Positions 18,674-54,200 of a stretch of DNA of 64,000 bases are shown here, in pieces. Under the pieces are notes generated by a model. The model had not been told where the DNA came from and did no database searches. It saw only the letters and a program-made list of their open reading frames with translations. The stretch lies in NCBI RefSeq assembly GCF_052425735.1, contig NC_135766.1:28334001-28398000 (forward strand), read 5' to 3'. Each line of letters starts with the position of its first letter. The first letter of the stretch is position 1. The position numbers and the translations under genes are program-made. Source of the stretch: Oculina patagonica (taxonomy: Eukaryota).

Positions 18674-21600
18674 CTATTGCGTTTCCATTCCAGATTTACT
18701 CAGTGACAGTTCTAGGGCATCAGCAGTTGCCTCTTGTCCCATCTTTTGCCTCCAAAGCACTAAAACCTGATAAACTTGTTCTCTTGAACGATGGGGGTAC
18801 TTCTTTTTCACCTCTCGTATTTCATGTTTGGTAAAACCAAGTTCACGAGCCAATGGAGTCCAGTCTCTTTCACCAATTTTACCAGCAATGTCCACTAGCA
18901 ACTCATTTGGGATGGAAGACTGATTCTCTGACCTAGCCCTAAAAATAGTAAAGCAATAAAAATAACTACATGCATAATCCGCCCCATTGAGAACCAAGCT
19001 CTTCAAATCATTTCCCCAAAGTGCAGTCTGTGAATCTGTGATCTTCGAATTTTATCAATTACCGGTAACAACTTTTTACACAAGAGAGCATGCTCTTTGT
19101 GTTTCCCGTTTAAATGATTACTTTGAACGATTTAATCATAACCCTGCAAACACTAGAAACAATGGAAAACAGCAAAATGGCCCAAAGTCAAACTTGATTT
19201 TGTGCACTGTAGTTTTTATTTAATTTTTAGGTGCCTCGATTTTTTTAATTCACTACCTTTAAGATTTAGAAACTTACATTAATTCTAGACTTTTATTTAG
19301 GAAAGCCTTGGACGATTTTTACTTGTAATTTTTATCATAGCTTTTTTGAGGTTTTAAACTTAGTGCATGATCCCCTTTTTATACGAATTTCATTACAAAT
19401 ATTCAGTAATTTTATTGAAATTTTTTTTTTAATATTTAGTCAGCAGGACCCCGCTGTTGTACTGAAGGATTTTCCTGGGTAAATATTCGGCTATTATTAT
19501 TATTGTAAATTATATAAATATATGTACAAAGGATTGTTTTATGTTTAATAACCCCCCCCCCTCCCCCTCGTCTTCTCTACTAAGCCAACCTTCCCAAAAT
19601 GATAATTTATAGCAAGGAAACATTATAATACTTTAGTGTTACGTCTTACCTACTGTATGGCGTCTGTGCGTCCATTTCTTCTGGTATAATGACAAACTTT
19701 GTGAGTTTGGCGATTTCATCTTCTGGAAGTTGTAAAGCCCAGTTAACCCACTGATCAACATCAATGTACCCTGAGCAAAGAAACAAAGAAAAATATCACA
19801 ATAACATCAATTGGTTAAACATGTTAGGAAAAGCACTGGACTTATTTGGATTGCATTTGATAAGGTTTCTTAGTATAATTTCAGAGGTGATTATAAGAAT
19901 TGAAGCATTCTGATTGGTCTAGAAGCTCAGCTTATGAGGCTATATTCACCCCGCGCGAGGTGATTATAGCTTTCAAGGCTTGGTTACTTAGCCACGCCAC
20001 CTTTGACATCCAGGCAAGTAAACATGGCCGCTTTTGCTGAATGAAAATTTCTTTGATTTGAAAGAAACCCGTCCAAGTCCTGGATATTTTAAACACTGGG
20101 AATTTTTTAAATTAACTACCAACTGAAGGCTTTTGGACCGAAAATATTTTCAAGAGATGGTTCTCAAGGCATTAGAAATGATCGTAAACACGGCGGTTTT
20201 GGCGATCGATGAGAAACTCAGTCAGATCGATTGAGCAAACATTATTTAGTTCTCTTCTCACCGGAGCTACTCATTTTCGAGAGGATTCCCACATTTGCTT
20301 AGAAGTCATCAACAATCATACAAAGGTAACGGACATCTATCTTTCTCATAGGTTTGTTTTGTTCCGTTTTATTGCTTTTACTAAATAAATTCTGATTGTA
20401 ATCGATGAATTAAACTGGTTTACACCGTATGCAAGCGAACACTTGTGTTTGCTGTTTTCTTGTTTGCTATCGTTATTTTTTAAGTTCTTGATGATCGCCT
20501 CTAAAAATTATACTAAAGCAATTATTCGCCTTAGGCTCAGTGATTATTGTTGAATAATCCCCTCGACTTTGTCTCGGGGATTATTCAACAATAATCACTT
20601 CGCCTTCGGCGAATAATTGTTAAATATCAAGTGGTCTCAGATTGAGCCCCTGATCAGAATTTTATGAATTCCTTAAATTAAACTTAAAGATGAATTCCAG
20701 TCCGTACTGCGCAATCTCGGCTGCAATGTTTATGTGAGCCCACACGAAGGATTAATGTTTACAAGCAAAACTAAAAATTACGCGACAAACTTACCTTTTT
20801 CTTCATAATTAACACCAGATATCTTTGCAGAACAAATAATAACGAGTAGAGGAACCTTGACGCTATTTAATTCAAACCGACGTTTAAGGTCATCGGAAAT
20901 TCTTGAACGAAACAAGCTGTAATGGCGGACTAAAAAAACTTCATGTATGCTGTCACCGAAGTGTAACGTTTCAACGAATTCAAAACCAAAACCAAAACAA
21001 ACCCCGAGTCTGCGCAATACGGACTGGAAATCAGCTTTAATTCCCATATTCTAGGGACCAAAAATACATTGTATATTCTATATTTCAGGACCCAACCCTC
21101 CAAGTTAAGACCATTTTAGTTGCCATGGCGACTAAAATTTTGGAGAGGGAAATTGAAACCAAAGTTGCCAGCCTGGCAACTTAAATTGAGAAGAAGGATT
21201 TAAAAAGCATGAGCTTAATTTAGCGACTAAAATTTTATACTGGCGACCAAACTTAAGCAGTCGGTGGCCAAATGGCCACTAAGAAAAAATTATTTTAAAG
21301 GGTTGGCAGGACCATCTCAAATAAGGATCTAGTATAGCAGTCAAAACAGAATGACATGAGAACAATCCTCAAGTAACAGTGATGGAGATGGATTGGGTAT
21401 GTATTGAGGAAAGACTGAAAACAACATGGTACAGGAAAGTAGAGGAATAGCAACGTTTGTGTTAGAGCTCAATCAACAGGACTGCAAAAGACTTGATGAA
21501 ATGGAGAAGCTGTGTTCACTGCACTTTGCACTAGCCGGCACGATGGGGATAAGTTAGTGAGTTTGTAGACAAAGCATTTTATTTTTACAGTGCCTCTCTC

Positions 21601-24600: not shown

Positions 24601-26032
24601 AAAAATAAAAATCGAATTTATAGTTGTATATTTCTTCGTGTGTAACCCTAAACGAGACCATTATGACTAAAAATATTGGCGTTTTGCCAGAACACCCTAA
24701 GCGAGACCAAAAATCTGAAATTTAAACCCCTAAGCGAGACGACGAGCATCCCCGTCACTTTCATATGCGAGTCCCCCCCCCCCCCCCGGGAGCTACATCT
24801 ACAGTCTAAATTGTCGTACAGCAAGTACATGCGACAAGGCAGTTTAAGAAGATCGTAAAAGACATTTCAAATGAAAAGGAGCTTCCAAAGATCTTGAAAA
24901 GACCTATTAGTTAGTTAGTAGCACTGACTCATACGAACATTAACCTGTTTCACAAAAGGATCTGTTGCGTAAGGCTGCTGCTGGAATGTCCCATTTGGCA
25001 GGGTTTGTTGATCATTGAGGCCAAGCTGCTGATATCTTGACCAAAGCCGTTCCACTTCGGCTACTGGAACTAAAAAAAAAACACAAAAACAAAAATAAAC
25101 AACAATGATATAACCACCAGTTTCAGTTTAACAAATATTTGTCAAACTCTTGTACAAATTTTTTGCAGATTTTCCCAGCACACATTTTGATATCTGTATT
25201 GATGGAAATGCGGCCTATGGCAGTTCAATTTTGACTAAAACTTCAATCAGTGTCTCTTAGGCAACGTATTTAGGTTAAATCACTTGACATAGGTGACAAA
25301 TTTTGCCAGTTGGTTCCTATTGAAACCTGAGAGAAAGTTTGGGAGAATTCAAAAATTTATATGACAATAAGCAGTTCAACACCCAAAATGTAAACAAATT
25401 TGAAAACTTATTTTTGGGATCCGAAATGTTTGTAAACAACCAATTGTACACTGTACCCTCAGGTACAAACAACAAACAAGTGTACACTGTAACCCTTGTG
25501 ATCAACTGCTCGATTTTAGAATAAGACAAAAGATAAGTTTACAATAGTATTTTAACCACTTGTGCACAACCAGAAACCCCATTCTTGTGATAGTAATCTG
25601 TACCTTTCCCAATTTCACTTCCTAAGCAAGACGTCATTGGCAGATTTTTTGATTCAGTATTATCAAACGTTTCTTCGCCAATCGAACTCAGAGTTGGCGG
25701 CGGAGGTATAGAATTTGTTGGCGTGACAGGATCTTTCTTTGAGAAAAGAGAAAATCGCCGAAAAAAGCTCATTTTCACAGAGAAGTTGGCGCGCGCGGTG
25801 GGGGTAAGCTTACTGTATCTGCTATAGCTGTTTGTTTATTATAAATTATGATTACAGTCATATTGTACATACCAGCATATTCCTCAAGGGCCGTTGGATT
25901 AGTTCTTTCAAACAAAGGCTTCAACACTTCTTCCAAAGAGTTCAAAGGTTGTTCTTGATCTGTGCTTCCCTCCTCTCCGACATCTCTCGCCTGTTCGGGT
26001 TGCTGTTTGTTTTTCTTCCAAAACTTGAGCAT
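18674..26032 (-). CDS. Calcineurin B/CHP-like EF-hand protein with C-terminal death domain (~307 aa, 7 exons)
   Basis: Exons 25873-26032, 24945-25069, 23714-23819, 22521-22609, 21707-21764, 19650-19770 and 18674-18938 join in frame at GT-AG sites. CHP/CnB-like segments: EVERLWSRYQQL, DPFVKQIWRTF..DENGNVTFHSF, PLDKRLAGIFKLL, LDDKDQGYIDVDQW. Death domain: IAGKIGERDWTPLARELGFTKHEI..QVYQVLVLWRQK..ATADAL. Confidence 0.85.
19870..20626. mobile_element. Non-autonomous element with terminal long branched hairpin (Crypton-like, tentative)
   Basis: attctgattgg motif near one end and a ~100-bp hairpin (20520-20619) at the other; same architecture at 61333-62530. Confidence 0.55.
20688..21036. mobile_element. 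MITE with TTAA TSD and AG termini (Kolobok-like)
   Basis: TIRs agatgaattccagtccgtactgcgca / tgcgcaatacggactggaaatcagct; TTAA on both sides. Confidence 0.75.
21964..22375. mobile_element. MITE, CCCAGGGG family, 8-bp TSD
   Basis: Near-identical to 6182-6599; TSD aacaatac. Confidence 0.88.
22621..22796. repeat. 176-bp near-perfect palindrome containing a hammerhead-like core (Penelope-type inverted end)
   Basis: Arms are reverse complements apart from about two differences; CTGATGA-a-GGTGA-acagatg-TCACC-GAAA at 22720-22748. Confidence 0.75.
24430..24790. mobile_element. MITE, CCCGG-poly(G) family, 8-bp TSD
   Basis: TIRs cccggaggggg..gactc / gagtcccc..ccggg; TSD agctacat. Confidence 0.82.
25604..25772 (-). 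CDS. Putative alternative first coding exon of the EF-hand/death-domain gene
   Basis: ATG-initiated MSFFRRFSLFSKKDPVTPTNSIPPPP...GSEIGK ends in a phase-1 AAG|GTACAG donor, matching the phase of exon 24945-25069. Confidence 0.5.
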
Positions 26033-26212: not shown

Positions 26213-26628
26213 GTTCTAAGCACCGCTGATCAGAGGGTGCGACTACTGCGATCTGTTTTGGATATTTTGCTACATCAAACAGGCTGTTAGAGTTGTGAGC
26301 CCGGTAAAGACCAGGTAAAGACTCTGTAAAAGGCAAGATTATTGTAATTTTAACTAAATATGTGGTTGAATGTAGTTTTAATCACTCAGAAATATTAATT
26401 TGTTGCTTTGTTCTGTTAAAATGTTACAAAGGGCCCTGCCAGATATTTGGCTATATCATCAACCCAAACATTTTGCAACAACTAAGCCCAGTTTGTTGTT
26501 ATAATTCTCATATCGTTAATTTAAAATAATAATGACACTCGTGCTGCATTATCTTGTTTATTTCAATAGAAATTAGGATAAGGATCACCAAGGGTCACAG
26601 GACGCCCAGGTCCAGTACCTTCAACGCA

Positions 26629-28113
26629 ATGTTCTGGTCTCAGCTGATGCAATTGTGCCAAAAAGCTCCTGTTTGGTTCATTGGTGTCCTTGGAGCTATT
26701 ATTATTTACACAATCCAACAGCTTATCATGGGATATGAGTTTCCGACAATCTGGATCTCTGTAGTGTTAACAGTGGTTTTTATTGCCACCATTGTCAAGA
26801 TGCTGATCTCAGTGCTCAGGACTCGTGTCATTTTCATTGACATGCCTGACCCCGACAACTATGCTGCTGTCTTGCTGCGTGCACATCAATCAAAAGAGAT
26901 TAACAACTGGCTGGCAGTGGTGGGTAGATGGGTGTTACAGAGATTGGGTCACCCTCTGTGTCCACTCTACATTGTCTGCGGCGGACGGCGTGTTAACCTA
27001 GGCTTAGCCCACAAGAACACAACCGAAAGATTTTTTGATCAATCAACAAAGACATGGTTGGAGTGGGACTTTCATCGACATATTGGTCCGCTCCCTGCAG
27101 ATGAAGCTATCATGAAGGATCCAAAGACAGTTGAAGACTCTGCCTTAGTTCTAAAGAAAAACATGTTTGATCTGGACTGCATCTTACAGACGGCTGGGTA
27201 TTCAGATTATGTCCTAGTGAAAGGACATATCGCCAAGCAGATACCATTGTCTTATTCACATCATGCAGATGAATGGCGTTTCTACAATAATGTCGAGAAG
27301 CACTGGGTCACGACAAATGAGTATGACCAACTGTCTGATGAACGCTGTAATGAATTTTACAAATTTCAGGACTTTGACCAGCGAAGGAAACTGGCACGTC
27401 ATTCTATGAACCAATTAACTGGTGTCTCTAATTTTGAGTCAAGTTCCACTGGCTCACACTGGTTAAGCTTAGACCAACTTCACAAACTGCTGCTGAAGTA
27501 TATGACCATTGACATCACAATGGCTGGTCCAGCAACTGACATGGCATACTTAGTAGATAAGTCATTAAATTGGACTCGGAATGTGAGAAAAATAAATGCA
27601 ATGTGGGCAGTCTGTGAACTGGGTCCAAACACCGGCAAGATGAACGTATGTGGGTTGAACTTTAATGAGGCAGCAGATGTTCAGGCTGCACAATACCTAT
27701 CTTCTAAACACTTCCCCAATGCCGCGTTTTCTTTCTTACCCACTGAGACATGCAAACTGACGCCGCAATTTAAAGTGACATGCAAGATGGCCGAGCGCAT
27801 TGATGTGTTGCGATGTCTTGTGGATAAAATAGCTCTTTGGACTCATGTTAAAGGTGGACAAACTGAACCGCTGTTTGACTATTTCATCTGTGAATCCTTA
27901 GATATTACAACAACATTGCAGAAGATGGGTCTTGTCAAAGTCTTTGTGATCCCGAACGCTGATAAGGGTTACATGATTTTGTCGCCCAGTACAAATGAAA
28001 CATTGTTCACTGCCTGGGTGAACCCAAGTGAAATGTTCAGGGTTTTCAGCTGGGGGCAAAATAACATTTCTTTCAATGGATCTCACTGGTCCAGTGCCAA
28101 AGTTGTTGGTTAA
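26629..28113 (+). CDS. Intronless membrane-anchored protein with divergent IU-nucleoside-hydrolase-like fold (~494 aa)
   Basis: Long open ORF whose first ATG (26629) follows a splice acceptor at ~26568. Two N-terminal hydrophobic helices, then IDMPDPDN (cf. DxDxxxDD), AGPATDMA (cf. GPLTNLA), NFNEAADVQAA (cf. EFN..DPEAA) and PLFDY (cf. LHDP). AATAAA at ~28152. Confidence 0.72.
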   Translation: MFWSQLMQLCQKAPVWFIGVLGAIIIYTIQQLIMGYEFPTIWISVVLTVVFIATIVKMLISVLRTRVIFIDMPDPDNYAAVLLRAHQSKEINNWLAVVGRWVLQRLGHPLCPLYIVCGGRRVNLGLAHKNTTERFFDQSTKTWLEWDFHRHIGPLPADEAIMKDPKTVEDSALVLKKNMFDLDCILQTAGYSDYVLVKGHIAKQIPLSYSHHADEWRFYNNVEKHWVTTNEYDQLSDERCNEFYKFQDFDQRRKLARHSMNQLTGVSNFESSSTGSHWLSLDQLHKLLLKYMTIDITMAGPATDMAYLVDKSLNWTRNVRKINAMWAVCELGPNTGKMNVCGLNFNEAADVQAAQYLSSKHFPNAAFSFLPTETCKLTPQFKVTCKMAERIDVLRCLVDKIALWTHVKGGQTEPLFDYFICESLDITTTLQKMGLVKVFVIPNADKGYMILSPSTNETLFTAWVNPSEMFRVFSWGQNNISFNGSHWSSAKVVG

Positions 28114-33458: not shown

Positions 33459-34493
33459 TTACCTGACTTTACTGCAAAACACTTTCCTTACAAACGATCT
33501 GAAATCGCTCATCTGTACAAGATAAATGATGAAGTTTAGGGCACTGTTTGAAAAGAACATTACAATCGTAAGACATCTTGTTCTATAATCTGATTCAAAA
33601 TCAAGAGAAGGTTTAACCAACATTACATAGGTTGCATAATAGAGTGACGAAGAATAAGGAATAATGAAAGCAAACGTAATTGCAATTAGGAGATATGTTC
33701 CACGGAGTTTTGCTGCCCTCAATTTCGCCTTGATGGCGTTGTTCATCTGAATATTCAATACTCTTTTCCTGTTTCTAGTCCATACGGTTTTTATCAGCGA
33801 AATGTTAATAAAACTCAAGATAAGGCTAGGTAAAATGTGTTGTAGTAGTACATAACTTATAAATATCAGTCGGAACGGTAAATTACTGTTGTCAATTTTA
33901 CAGACAATAGTGTAATGTGTTTCGTCGAGATCGAATCTAATCCCGTTGAACGCCCCCGCGGGTACACATACGAGGAGAAACCCTACAATCCAAGTACCAA
34001 ACACGAGCCTGCGAACAGTAGAGACGCTAAACGTGCGGGGTATAGCCCGAGTTGAAAAATATCTCTCTGTACTTATCGCTATTAAATTATTCATTGTAAT
34101 TGAGGGAAATAACATGTTAAGATATCGAACTGTCTTGCACGCCCAACCATACTGAAAAAGGTCAAACATCAATTGGACATAAACTAAAGGGAGAGAAATT
34201 ATGTTGGAAAGTATATCCGAAAGGGCTAAACTCTTAACATAAAAGTGAAAATTTCTTATAAAAGGACTTGACTGCAAATATGACAGTGTTTTACTTTTTG
34301 ATGAAATAAAATAATAAATGAGGCTATTGCCCACAAAACCAACAGTTCCAACAATGGCCAATAATAAGAAGACCACTAGTTTAGTAGTAGAACTTGCTGG
34401 TATGAACACATAATCTCGACTTGCGTCTGTGTTGTTAAGCATAGCAGACTGGTTGTTGGTAAAGAGATTGGGCGACAGCGGCGAACCGCCCAT
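33459..34493 (-). CDS. Orphan rhodopsin-like (class A) GPCR, single coding exon
   Basis: Seven hydrophobic segments with GN in TM1, LALSD, C..ERY, W in TM4 and NFIIY (NPxxY variant). ATG at 34493 lies just downstream of an acceptor at 34503. Confidence 0.9.
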   Translation of the reverse strand: MGGSPLSPNLFTNNQSAMLNNTDASRDYVFIPASSTTKLVVFLLLAIVGTVGFVGNSLIYYFISSKSKTLSYLQSSPFIRNFHFYVKSLALSDILSNIISLPLVYVQLMFDLFQYGWACKTVRYLNMLFPSITMNNLIAISTERYFSTRAIPRTFSVSTVRRLVFGTWIVGFLLVCVPAGAFNGIRFDLDETHYTIVCKIDNSNLPFRLIFISYVLLQHILPSLILSFINISLIKTVWTRNRKRVLNIQMNNAIKAKLRAAKLRGTYLLIAITFAFIIPYSSSLYYATYVMLVKPSLDFESDYRTRCLTIVMFFSNSALNFIIYLVQMSDFRSFVRKVFCSKVR

Positions 34494-51200: not shown

Positions 51201-54200
51201 GCCAACACCTGACATCCCAGGAGCAGGCCCGTCTAAAGCCTAGTCGCGATAGATTTGTCCACAGCTGGTTGTTTGACAAGATGCTCAACTTTTGCCATAA
51301 AACGGAAATTGCTTGGCTGGTTTATGAGGAAGGAAAGGGCATGTTTTGCTATCTGTGCAAGAAACACAACACAGAAAATCAATAAAACAAGTCCAAGGTT
51401 TATAATGCAACCCCGTGCATACGCTTTAAGAAGTCAGCTGTTCAAGAACATTTAGCAACTCAGCAACACAAGGATGCTGTTGGAGCTGAAATGTTAGCAA
51501 GGGTGTCAGTGTTTCATAAAGAGATACAGGAAAGGAAAATAGTGAAAGATGATGTCATGTTTAAGGCTTTCTATGCGGCATACTGGCTTGTCAAAGAGGA
51601 AATTTCCAACCAAAAGTTTTCATCTCTTCTAGATCTGCTTAAATTGCTTGGGCTCGATCACATGAAGCATTTCCAGTATTCTTCACAGGGTTCTTTAAGA
51701 GAAATCTTTTTGGCACTGGGCTCTGCATTGCTCGAAAAGTTGTTGGAAAAGGTGAAGAAAGCAGGCTGCTATGGCTTGCTTACTGATGAAGTCAGTGATG
51801 TTACAGTCATGGAAATGCTTATCACCTTCATCCAGTACTTCAACAAAGAAACAGAGCAAGCTGAGACAAGCTTCTTGTTTATCGAAGACGTTCTAAAGAA
51901 CTCCAATTCAGCCAATGCAGAAACCATCTTTACAGTCCTCACAAGCCAGCTAGCTGAGTTTGGTCCAGAGATACAGAAGTGCAGTTCATTGGTTTCAGAT
52001 GGTGCAAGTGTTATGACCGGTGCATGTGGTGGAGTGGCAACCCGTCTGAAGCAACTTAATCCTCAAATGATTTCTCTGCACTGCTTGTGCCATAAGCTTG
52101 CATTAGCCTGCACCGACACTAGCAGCCAAATAGAATACATACGAAATGTTGAGCTCTGGCTAAGGCAGCTTTGGAAACTGTTTGAAAATTCACCGAAGCG
52201 TACAGCAACGTACTTGAAAGTACAAATAAATTTGAAATCCTTAGTCCTCTCTGATAAGAGTAAGAAGGTTGTAACAAAGAAGATAAAGAAGGCCTGCCAG
52301 ACCAGATGGCTGTCTTTTGATGCAGCTACAAGTGCCATTTATGAAGATTACAATGCATTATTGCAGACTTTAAGGCAGCTGAAAGAGACTGATGCAGTCG
52401 CTTCTGGCCTCCTCAGCAAGATAGATTCCTCCAAGTTTATTGGAACAATTTACATTCTTAAAGAAATTCTTCCTGTCCTTTCCAACTTGAGCAAGAACTT
52501 TCAACGTGGGCAAGTCAACTTCTCACACATCCAGCCGTCCATTAGTTACACCTTGCAGAAGCTGACTGAAATTGCAGATTCCCAGTCCCCAATAACAGCC
52601 CTGAAGCGAGACATAGAAGGACGCCTGGCTATATCTGGGGTAAACTTGAGTACTGCCACAGAAAATCAGCTTACCAATCTTCTTTCAAAATATGTTACAG
52701 CCCTGAAGGAGAACATTCACCACCGGTTTGATGATGATCTCCCTGTTGTCAGTGCCTTGTCCATTTTCAACCCATTGACCTTGCCCAAGCCAGGGTCTGG
52801 TGCATTTAAGGAGCACGGAGCAAATAAGGCACAGACATTGGCAAAGCACTTCTTCAGTGAACCAGCCAAACAAGAGCAGCTACTAGCTGAATGGGAGAAA
52901 TTTAAATTTGATATGGATGCTTGGAAGCAAGAGATCCCAGAAGAGGTGAAGGAGAGCCACCTTGAAACAGCAACAGAGTGGTGCCTTAAACGACTGATCT
53001 CTCTCAAGACATCTTACAGCATTGTGTTTCCTGCTCTGACAAACATTGCTGAAGTCTGTTTGTCAATGCCCGTTTCTAACGCATGGCCGGAAAGAGGTGG
53101 CAGCGCCCTGAAACGTATCAAGACTCGGCTGAGAAACCGACTAAATGTTACCATGCTCCAGTCACTTCTAATGGTCTCTATTAATGGTCCCAAGGTCGGA
53201 ACCACAGAATGTGAATCCCTAGTCACAGCCGCAGTGGAGAAGTGGCAAGCCCAGAAAAAGAGGCGAAAAATGCCTAAGGCAGTGTCGTCAACCTCAGTTG
53301 CAGCCTCTTCCTCCACACAAGTGGCTGTGATTGAGACAGCTGATGCCTGTGTGCAAACACACCCGCCCCAGGCTCACCCCGCTGGTGATAATAGAGATGG
53401 AGAATTAGAGGTGCAGATTGCTAGTGCCGCCCTGAACCTGACCGATGATGCTTTGTGCCAAGAAGAAGCAGACTCTGATTATGATAGTGATTGTGACGTC
53501 GACGATGTTGATGATGCCTTACTTTTCTAAATTACATGACTTGGTTTTGATTTTGTTCTATAGAATAGTCTATCAAATTGAAGCATAAAGAACTGAAACA
53601 ATCAAATTGTTTGTAACACTAGCACAGACAAAGGACTTTTATCTTTTTACTGTACCTTCCCAAAGCAAATTGTTTGTGAATCAAATTGCAATTAACTTTT
53701 AAAACGTGACTAGGCAGCGTGATGTAAAATAAGACTGAGCTAAATTTGTCAAAGAACAACAAGTTGAACTTTTTAAGTGGATTTTTCACTGAATTTTACC
53801 ATAATGAACATCTGAAAATTCCCCTTGAAAACATGCTCAGATTGCAGGAAATGGCCTCTAAGCAACTGTATATTTCAAAAATTTCTGGGGGAGCATGCCC
53901 CAAGACCCCCCTAGAAGGGGGCGCTTTGCGCCCCAAAACGCACACTTCGCGTGCTAGATGATCTACTAGCCGGCTATTCTATTGACATCAGCCGGCTACT
54001 ATAAATTCTAATGACAACCCTGCGTTTAATCGAGAAAATACGACGAAGTCAACAAACACAACAGAGAGTTTCTCTGGTTGATTAAAAATCCTCACTGAAA
54101 TAAAGTAAAAAAGTGAAATAGCATAATCGTAACATTGGTTGGTATTGCGTCTGGCTTTTTCTTTCTTTCTTTCTTTTTTTTTTTTTGGGGGGGGGGGGGT

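Follow-up and report, generated by a model that had tools for sequence, protein, structure and literature searches.

We analysed a stretch of 64,000 nucleotides (nt) from the scleractinian coral Oculina patagonica (NCBI RefSeq assembly GCF_052425735.1, contig NC_135766.1, positions 28,334,001 to 28,398,000 of the forward strand), here called the window; all coordinates below are positions within it. A gene on the minus strand, running from 26032 to 18674, encodes a protein in which an EF-hand-like domain is followed by a C-terminal death domain. The Oculina protein and its orthologs in other animals are referred to as the family.

Gene model and transcripts

The coding features are listed below, with the matching interval of an orthologous coral transcript contig (L001) where this was determined.

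Exon 1: 25873-26032, minus strand; start codon and amino acids (aa) 1-53, with a basic-hydrophobic beginning (MLKFWKKNK...) and then an acidic region, predicted to be disordered; ATG and GT donor.
Exon 2: 24945-25069, minus strand; aa 54-95, entering helix (invariant W63) and EF1 loop GLNDQQTLPNGT, degenerate; L001 302-430.
Exon 3: 23714-23819, minus strand; aa 96-130, EF2 loop PRDENGNVTFHS, degenerate (Pro1, Ser12); L001 426-541.
Exon 4: 22521-22609, minus strand; aa 131-160, shortened and degenerate EF3 region LNKSQPLDVPAL; L001 531-623.
Exon 5: 21707-21764, minus strand; aa 161-179, EF4 entering helix and loop residues 1-5 (DDKDQ); L001 623-684.
Exon 6: 19650-19770, minus strand; aa 180-219, remainder of the EF4 loop (GYIDVDQ), exiting helix and a conserved C-terminal extension (P195, F205, P209); L001 679-802.
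Tandem acceptor: 18932-18938, minus strand; AG at 18939-18940 and again at 18933-18934.
Exon 7: 18674-18938, minus strand; aa 220-307 and the stop codon (18674-18676), short disordered linker and death domain; L001 800-1051, contiguous with exon 6.
Death domain proper: 18692-18916, minus strand; aa 228-302, Pfam PF00531.

The minus strand was read and spliced by script, which gave a stop-free open reading frame (ORF) of 307 aa. The coding sequence (CDS) is 924 nt long (307 codons and the stop) and has GT-AG borders at every intron, the exon 4 donor being GTAGGT directly after 22521. The translation is identical, residue for residue, to the deposited Oculina patagonica protein XP_078384371.1 / KAL9963109.1 (P0216), so that seven small exons splicing into a protein of about 307 aa, as the first-pass annotation had proposed from the letters of the DNA, were confirmed and the gene model is real. 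In GenBank/RefSeq the gene, LOC144666841, is labelled uncharacterized, and the protein was deposited as 'hypothetical protein ACROYT_G032284'. The RefSeq isoform X2 (P0151, 305 aa) is 99.3% identical to the spliced model and differs from it only by a gap of two residues at the exon 6/7 junction. This difference is due to the tandem AG acceptor, as an exon 7 that starts at 18932, after the AG found 6 nt downstream, drops Ala-Arg. Exon 1 was recovered by tblastn of isoform P0151 with 100% identity over aa 1-53.

Transcript evidence came from related corals. A contig of 1410 nt (L001, Logan SRR28002488) carries a 74.5% identical coral ortholog (P0002) as one uninterrupted ORF and is colinear with all seven exons of the window, a match far above chance. 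The whole CDS was also found on intron-free contigs of Stylophora pistillata (L004, 1163 nt) and Acropora palmata (L005, L006), and full CDSs were thus present on transcript contigs of three coral lineages (L001/L002, L004, L005/L006). In Nematostella, too, the gene is divided into seven coding blocks, whose borders fall at equivalent residues. Together, the transcript contigs and the Nematostella layout place the death-domain exon in the same mRNA as exons 1-6 within the family. The junction from 19650 to 18938, which had been singled out as the one most in need of checking, was joined in the ortholog transcripts (exon 6 at 679-802 and exon 7 at 800-1051 of L001). Transcripts that end before the death-domain exon would have undone the predicted fusion; those of the related corals include this exon.

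The death domain and the EF-hand-like domain

The predicted C-terminal death domain was borne out by score and by fold. Against a Pfam Death cut-off of 22.6 bits, exon 7 alone scored 56.7 and the whole protein 53.6. In the AlphaFold2 (AF2) model of the Oculina isoform, residues 228-300 had a predicted local distance difference test (pLDDT) score of about 83-93. Superposition with VIA-align on solved death domains of ankyrin, RIPK1, FADD and RAIDD gave Z 12.3-13.3, root-mean-square deviations (rmsd) of 1.1-2.0 A and 25-34% identity, with Z 13.3 to ankyrin-B (rmsd 1.1 A) and 12.9 to both RIPK1 and FADD. Foldseek matched the same four proteins. A family profile built from 18 members and searched against PDB sequences with HMMER matched the death domains of RIPK1 (9e-14), FADD (1.3e-11) and CRADD (5e-11), and also of ankyrin-2.

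A four-EF-hand domain of the calcineurin B/CHP/CIB type spans residues 54-207; only the family profile and the predicted fold reveal it. Pfam scans made exon by exon found no significant EF-hand, the nearest being a weak EF-hand_1 match in exon 3 (E 0.16), and the whole Oculina protein stayed below the gathering cut-offs for EF-hand_1 (14.5 bits, cut-off 25.4) and EF-hand_7 (13.9 bits, cut-off 30). A few orthologs, for example P0171 and P0070, reach or graze the Pfam EF-hand thresholds. Because the EF-hand models are sub-threshold, orthologs have been named just 'Death domain-containing protein' or even 'ankyrin-3' and 'THO complex subunit 1-like'. With the family profile, the N-terminal domain matched the following proteins.

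Calcineurin B: E 6e-12, 48.9 bits, profile positions 38-176 without large indels.
CBL4/SOS3: E 4.5e-10, 42.7 bits.
KChIP1: E 1.3e-9, 41.3 bits.
CHP1 (p22): E 1.2e-7, 34.8 bits.
Calaxin: E 1.6e-7, 34.4 bits.
NCS-1: E 2e-7, 34.0 bits.

Foldseek retrieved CIB3, calcineurin B, CHP1/2, SOS3/CBL2 and NCS-1 for this domain, with probability 1.00 and TM-scores by target of 0.6-0.7. VIA-align gave Z 9.5-11 overall and 10-11 for CIB, CALM-1, CHP and calcineurin B. Homology and fold thus agree across a domain of about 150 residues. In the AF2 model of the Oculina isoform (mean pLDDT 74.6), residues 55-205 and 228-300 were confident, residues 1-52 (pLDDT below 50) and the linker 215-224 disordered; the model of the amphioxus ortholog, made from a 37-sequence alignment, had a pLDDT of 84.9. 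Calcineurin B, CHP, CIB, KChIP and CBL proteins clamp the amphipathic helix of a client in a hydrophobic groove, the clients being calcineurin A, NHE exchangers, TMC channels, Kv4 and CIPK kinases. The middle of the protein had been described as CHP/tescalcin-like by eye. Its resemblance to CHP and calcineurin B holds, but the label was too specific, as calcineurin B (48.9 bits), CBL4 and KChIP1 all outscore CHP1 (34.8 bits) and the fold is about equally close to CIB, CHP and calcineurin B; this placement is based on profile scores and fold.

The calcium-ligand loops were tabulated over 63 aligned family members, with the register taken from the HMMER alignment to calcineurin B.

EF1: nearly all members have Gly1, with Ala, Val, Thr or Met at position 12; in Oculina Gly1 and Thr12.
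EF2: in anthozoans Pro1 with Ser or Ala at position 12; in bilaterians Met, Pro, Ile or a gap at position 1 with Asn, Thr or Ser at position 12.
EF3: shorter than the canonical loop, with a two-residue deletion relative to the EF3 loop of calcineurin B.
EF4: in Oculina DDKDQGYIDVDQ, aa 175-186, across the exon 5/6 junction; Asp1, Gly6, Ile8 and Asp9 are kept, and Lys3, Gln5 and Gln12 are present.

Glu at position 12 was absent from every loop in these tables. Each loop is without at least two of the ligand positions, both in Oculina and in the family consensus, and by sequence none fits a functional EF-hand, which requires 12 loop residues, oxygen ligands at positions 1, 3, 5 and 9, and a final Glu or Asp at position 12. 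In the EF4 loop of bilaterians, Lys occupies position 5 in 29 of 50 sequences; at position 12 there is Gln, Ser, Gly, Asp, Asn or Lys, but never Glu. Replacement of the position-12 Glu by Gln is a standard means to disable an EF-hand. The best EF loop of the Oculina protein had been noted to lack this Glu, which proved correct (Gln12), with Lys3 and Gln5 in addition. The suggestion that Ca2+ binding may be reduced or lost is also supported at this level and extends to the whole family. Judged from the alignment, the canonical Ca2+ ligands have been lost family-wide from all four EF loops, and the EF-hand domain probably no longer senses Ca2+.

The alternative is a switch regulated by Ca2+ (or Mg2+), in which one or more of the atypical loops would bind an ion, the groove would open or the death domain be freed, and a rise in Ca2+ would trigger death-domain assembly. 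The domain does belong to the Ca2+-sensor group of calcineurin B, CBL, NCS and CHP proteins, the EF4 loop keeps the four residues named above, Asp is found at position 12 in 7 of 50 bilaterian sequences, and P0171 and P0070 come up to or close to the Pfam thresholds. We nevertheless regard such a switch as unlikely, given the two or more ligand positions missing per loop, the absence of Glu12, the Lys or Gln at positions 3 and 5 of EF4, and Oculina scores of 13.9-14.5 bits that lie far under the cut-offs of 25-30.

Distribution and descent of the family

The death-domain exon was used for an exhaustive search and the full model then for BLAST, which showed ten representatives of 50%-identity clusters that match across both domains. 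Two profile searches and cluster look-ups were added to BLAST to name the members, which were distributed as follows.

Scleractinians: Oculina, Stylophora, Acropora palmata, A. cervicornis and Desmophyllum.
Other cnidarian: Nematostella.
Molluscs: many gastropods and bivalves.
Annelids: Owenia, and Dimorphilus by fold.
Nemertean: Tubulanus.
Echinoderms: sea stars and a crinoid.
Hemichordates: Ptychodera and Glandiceps.
Amphioxus: four Branchiostoma species or hybrids.
Vertebrates: Xenopus laevis, X. tropicalis, Polypterus (bichir), Protopterus (lungfish) and the teleost Aldrovandia.

Full-length orthologs were thus found in at least eight phyla, vertebrates among them. The nearest neighbour in the ESM Atlas was a chordate cluster of 62 members (score 0.94). 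Among the matches listed there was no arthropod, nematode, tunicate, bird or mammal member, and none of the named members is an amniote. The first-pass annotation had called the protein an unusual domain fusion with an architecture not recognised from vertebrates. This did not hold, as full-length members extend from Cnidaria to Xenopus, Polypterus, Protopterus and Aldrovandia. A well-characterised ortholog of this architecture, which would equally have spoken against an unusual fusion, was not among them: orthologs exist and none is characterised.

A maximum-likelihood (ML) tree of 32 members reproduced the species tree, with 100% support each for Cnidaria, Bilateria, Vertebrata and Mollusca, 99% for Echinodermata and 88% for Spiralia. 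Between Oculina and bilaterians, identity was 26-36% in the EF domain and 27-36% in the death domain, so the two are about equally conserved. From the congruence of the tree with the species and the similar conservation of both domains it follows that the fusion is ancient and vertically inherited and not a coral novelty. The proteins, of about 300 aa, make up an ancient, single-copy-like metazoan family that has been inherited vertically since the cnidarian-bilaterian ancestor. In Xenopus laevis the ortholog (L009 10001-102765) spans about 93 kb, and its death domain is encoded on two exons as compared to one in the anthozoan genes.

Lineage-specific domain shuffling in corals, or an artefact joining two neighbouring genes, would be in keeping with the wide reshuffling of death domains in cnidarians and amphioxus and with a Pfam result that detects the Death domain only and leaves the N-terminal part looking like an orphan. 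This explanation is extremely improbable, since the full-length two-domain layout recurs from corals to Xenopus in a tree congruent with the species, intron-free transcript contigs span both domains, and the seven-exon structure is common to Nematostella. A coral-specific fusion and a mis-joined gene model were ruled out by the ortholog transcripts, the wide distribution and the species-like tree.

The comparable conservation also bears on whether the EF-hand-like domain has a function of its own. The protein could be a decoy or damper whose sole functional part is the death domain, which would cap death-domain oligomers or compete within them, and whose EF-like domain is a mere structural or solubility module. 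In favour of this, it is a small protein with no enzymatic or second signalling domain, and its best-scoring part is the death domain. We consider it quite unlikely, because the EF-like domain has been conserved as much as the death domain over more than 500 million years, its invariant hydrophobic and aromatic core and conserved C-terminal extension argue for selection on it, and the conserved N-terminal myristoylation motif of the family argues for targeted localisation.

This motif is found in bilaterians. MG-x-x-x-S/T/A was present at the start of 47 of the 51 bilaterian sequences listed (for example MGAYAS, MGQYAS and MGVYSS) and a few residues inside in two further ones (P0083, P0168), while an amphioxus entry without MG (P0184) has cluster-mates that begin MGAYAS. 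MGxxxS is the N-myristoyltransferase consensus common to calcineurin B, CHP and NCS proteins, and in the bilaterian members it is followed by a conserved 'NWITAHAE' helix. The Oculina protein begins MLK and so lacks the Gly-2 that is a trait of the CHP family, just as had been noted; the absence, however, is not general, as most of the bilaterian members listed do carry the motif. Anthozoan proteins start with ML or MF followed by K-F (MFKFLRR, and MLKFWKK in Oculina), and an acidic disordered stretch comes next. By sequence comparison, the missing Gly-2 is a derived anthozoan state.

Known adaptors, a possible role and the surroundings of the gene

Calcineurin B (PPP3R1), with the CBL, NCS and KChIP proteins grouped with it, is the closest known relative of the EF-hand-like domain: its profile match (E 6e-12) covers nearly the whole domain, its fold is the same (TM-score by target 0.65-0.69, Z about 10), and it has the N-terminal Gly-2 motif found in bilaterian family members. 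It differs in that identity is just 18-20% or so, that the family has a death domain attached, and that calcineurin B binds four Ca2+ ions whereas the four loops of the family are without canonical ligands. The fold is likewise shared with CHP1, CHP2, tescalcin and CIB1-3/CALM-1 (Z 10.3-11.0 for CHP1, CHP2, CIB3 and the TMC-bound CALM-1 of C. elegans). CHP and CIB proteins are myristoylated, have partly degenerate EF-hands and clamp the client helix of a membrane transporter or channel. In contrast to the coral gene's family, where they appear non-functional, EF3 and EF4 are functional in CHP and CIB; the CHP1 profile score is also below that of calcineurin B, and the Oculina protein lacks Gly-2 and has a C-terminal death domain.

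On the death-domain side, the small two-module layout resembles that of FADD (DED and death domain) and CRADD (CARD and death domain). The partner module is of the EF-hand type and not a DED, CARD, kinase or ZU5-UPA as in RIPK1, FADD, CRADD/RAIDD and ankyrin. A fold search of reviewed Swiss-Prot entries returned no protein matching across both domains. Unnamed orthologs (Stylophora LOC111340379, Nematostella LOC116607750, Branchiostoma LOC118412015, Xenopus tropicalis LOC101730712 and Patiria LOC119724340) share the length, both domains and their order, at 25-75% full-length identity; the bilaterian ones differ by MGxxxS and the 'NWITAHAE' helix, in place of which anthozoans have a basic start and an acidic disordered stretch.

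Several proteins of the calcineurin B, CHP, CIB, KChIP and CBL type are myristoylated, several have dead EF-hands with a structural role, and death domains act by homotypic oligomerisation. By analogy with the clamping of client helices by CHP and CIB, we infer that the protein is probably a Ca2+-insensitive, membrane-proximal adaptor that bridges a client to a death-domain assembly. Its layout comprises a short, putatively membrane-targeting N-terminal segment, the four-EF-hand domain, a variable disordered linker and the C-terminal death domain. The lipid or basic N-terminus would hold the protein at the membrane, the EF-hand domain would serve as a constitutive clamp for the amphipathic helix of the client, and its own death domain would join or recruit homotypic oligomers of RIPK1/FADD/ankyrin-type death domains.

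Several points weigh against this adaptor reading. The transcripts come from orthologs, and Oculina itself is represented by RefSeq models. Some members have loops that are near-canonical save for position 12, such as the crinoid loop DNDGNGFITEDQ, and ions can still bind non-canonical EF loops. The relative orientation of the two domains was predicted without confidence (predicted TM-score 0.51-0.57), and a membrane role of the anthozoan N-terminus is a guess.

A broader form of the adaptor reading, which we put forward tentatively and would rate as somewhat doubtful, is a pan-metazoan class of lipid-anchored pseudo-EF-hand/death-domain adaptors, older than the cnidarian-bilaterian split, that would wire a membrane client of the CHP/CIB type (an exchanger, channel or receptor tail) directly to RIPK/FADD/MyD88-like assemblies. 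If true, such a class would be a missing link in models of death-domain signalling, which are built on mammals and flies.

A full-text search of open-access papers and preprints with domain words and gene identifiers returned nothing on the family, and no name or reviewed entry was found; in the matches that looked promising, the only EF-hands were those of calpains, TLR-like proteins or dinoflagellates. The novelty lies in recognising these 'uncharacterized' or 'Death domain-containing' proteins as one ancient family with a calcineurin B-like pseudo-EF-hand domain and, in bilaterians, a myristoylation motif. The gene itself is an ordinary ortholog, already annotated in RefSeq, and is not unusual in any way peculiar to this window. 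Apoptosis, necroptosis and innate immune signalling are wired through death-domain adaptors, and in the known small ones the death domain is combined with a DED, CARD or TIR. In this family its partner is calcineurin-B/CHP-like and appears to have lost calcium sensing, and the pairing has been kept for more than half a billion years. For coral biology, with relevance to bleaching and symbiosis, the protein is a candidate link by which membrane ion-transport or receptor complexes could act on immune or cell-death decisions. Xenopus is a tractable model in which vertebrate biologists could study a death-domain adaptor not found among human or mouse reviewed proteins.

The introns of the gene contain near-perfect inverted repeats resembling miniature inverted-repeat transposable elements (22621-22796, 20519-20619, 24431-24790, 21970-22371 and 20684-21040). 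One of them, a palindrome with 56-nt arms, precedes the exon 4 acceptor by about 40 nt, and two elements are flanked by G/C homopolymer runs. These repeats explain much of the size difference to the 3.2-kb Stylophora gene. Intron 1 also holds, at 25604-25772 on the minus strand, an ATG-initiated block of 169 nt with a GT donor, a frame compatible with exon 2 and a basic-hydrophobic start (MSFFRRFSLFSKK...). It is a candidate for an alternative first exon; it had no homolog in any fetched protein or locus and is absent from the RefSeq isoforms.

Head-to-head with exon 1, about 520 bp away, lies an intronless ORF of 519 aa (26554-28113, plus strand) with a sub-threshold Pfam match to nucleoside hydrolase (16.6 bits, cut-off 34.2). 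In Stylophora a 65% identical copy (L003 9671-8232) is likewise head-to-head with the ortholog, and gene calling there had fused it to a dynactin-p62 gene; the Nematostella and Xenopus orthologs had no match within 10 kb. The pairing is therefore scleractinian microsynteny and, as regards a functional module, neutral evidence. Directly downstream of the death-domain gene, a sequence at about 18400-18470 is tRNA-like by eye and may be the head of a short interspersed nuclear element, although ARAGORN called no tRNA there. Further downstream are exons of two fatty-acid elongase (ELO) genes (about 7176-7528, 8975-9238, 14180-14336, 15714-15973 and 16619-17021), both syntenic with two ELO genes beside the Stylophora ortholog. 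Elsewhere in the window, an intronless ORF of 347 aa (33459-34502, minus strand) matches rhodopsin-family G-protein-coupled receptors (7tm_1, 53.4 bits), and an ORF of 679 aa (51491-53530, plus strand), which has a dimerisation domain of hAT-family transposases (26.7 bits), probably represents a hAT transposon or a copy that was domesticated.

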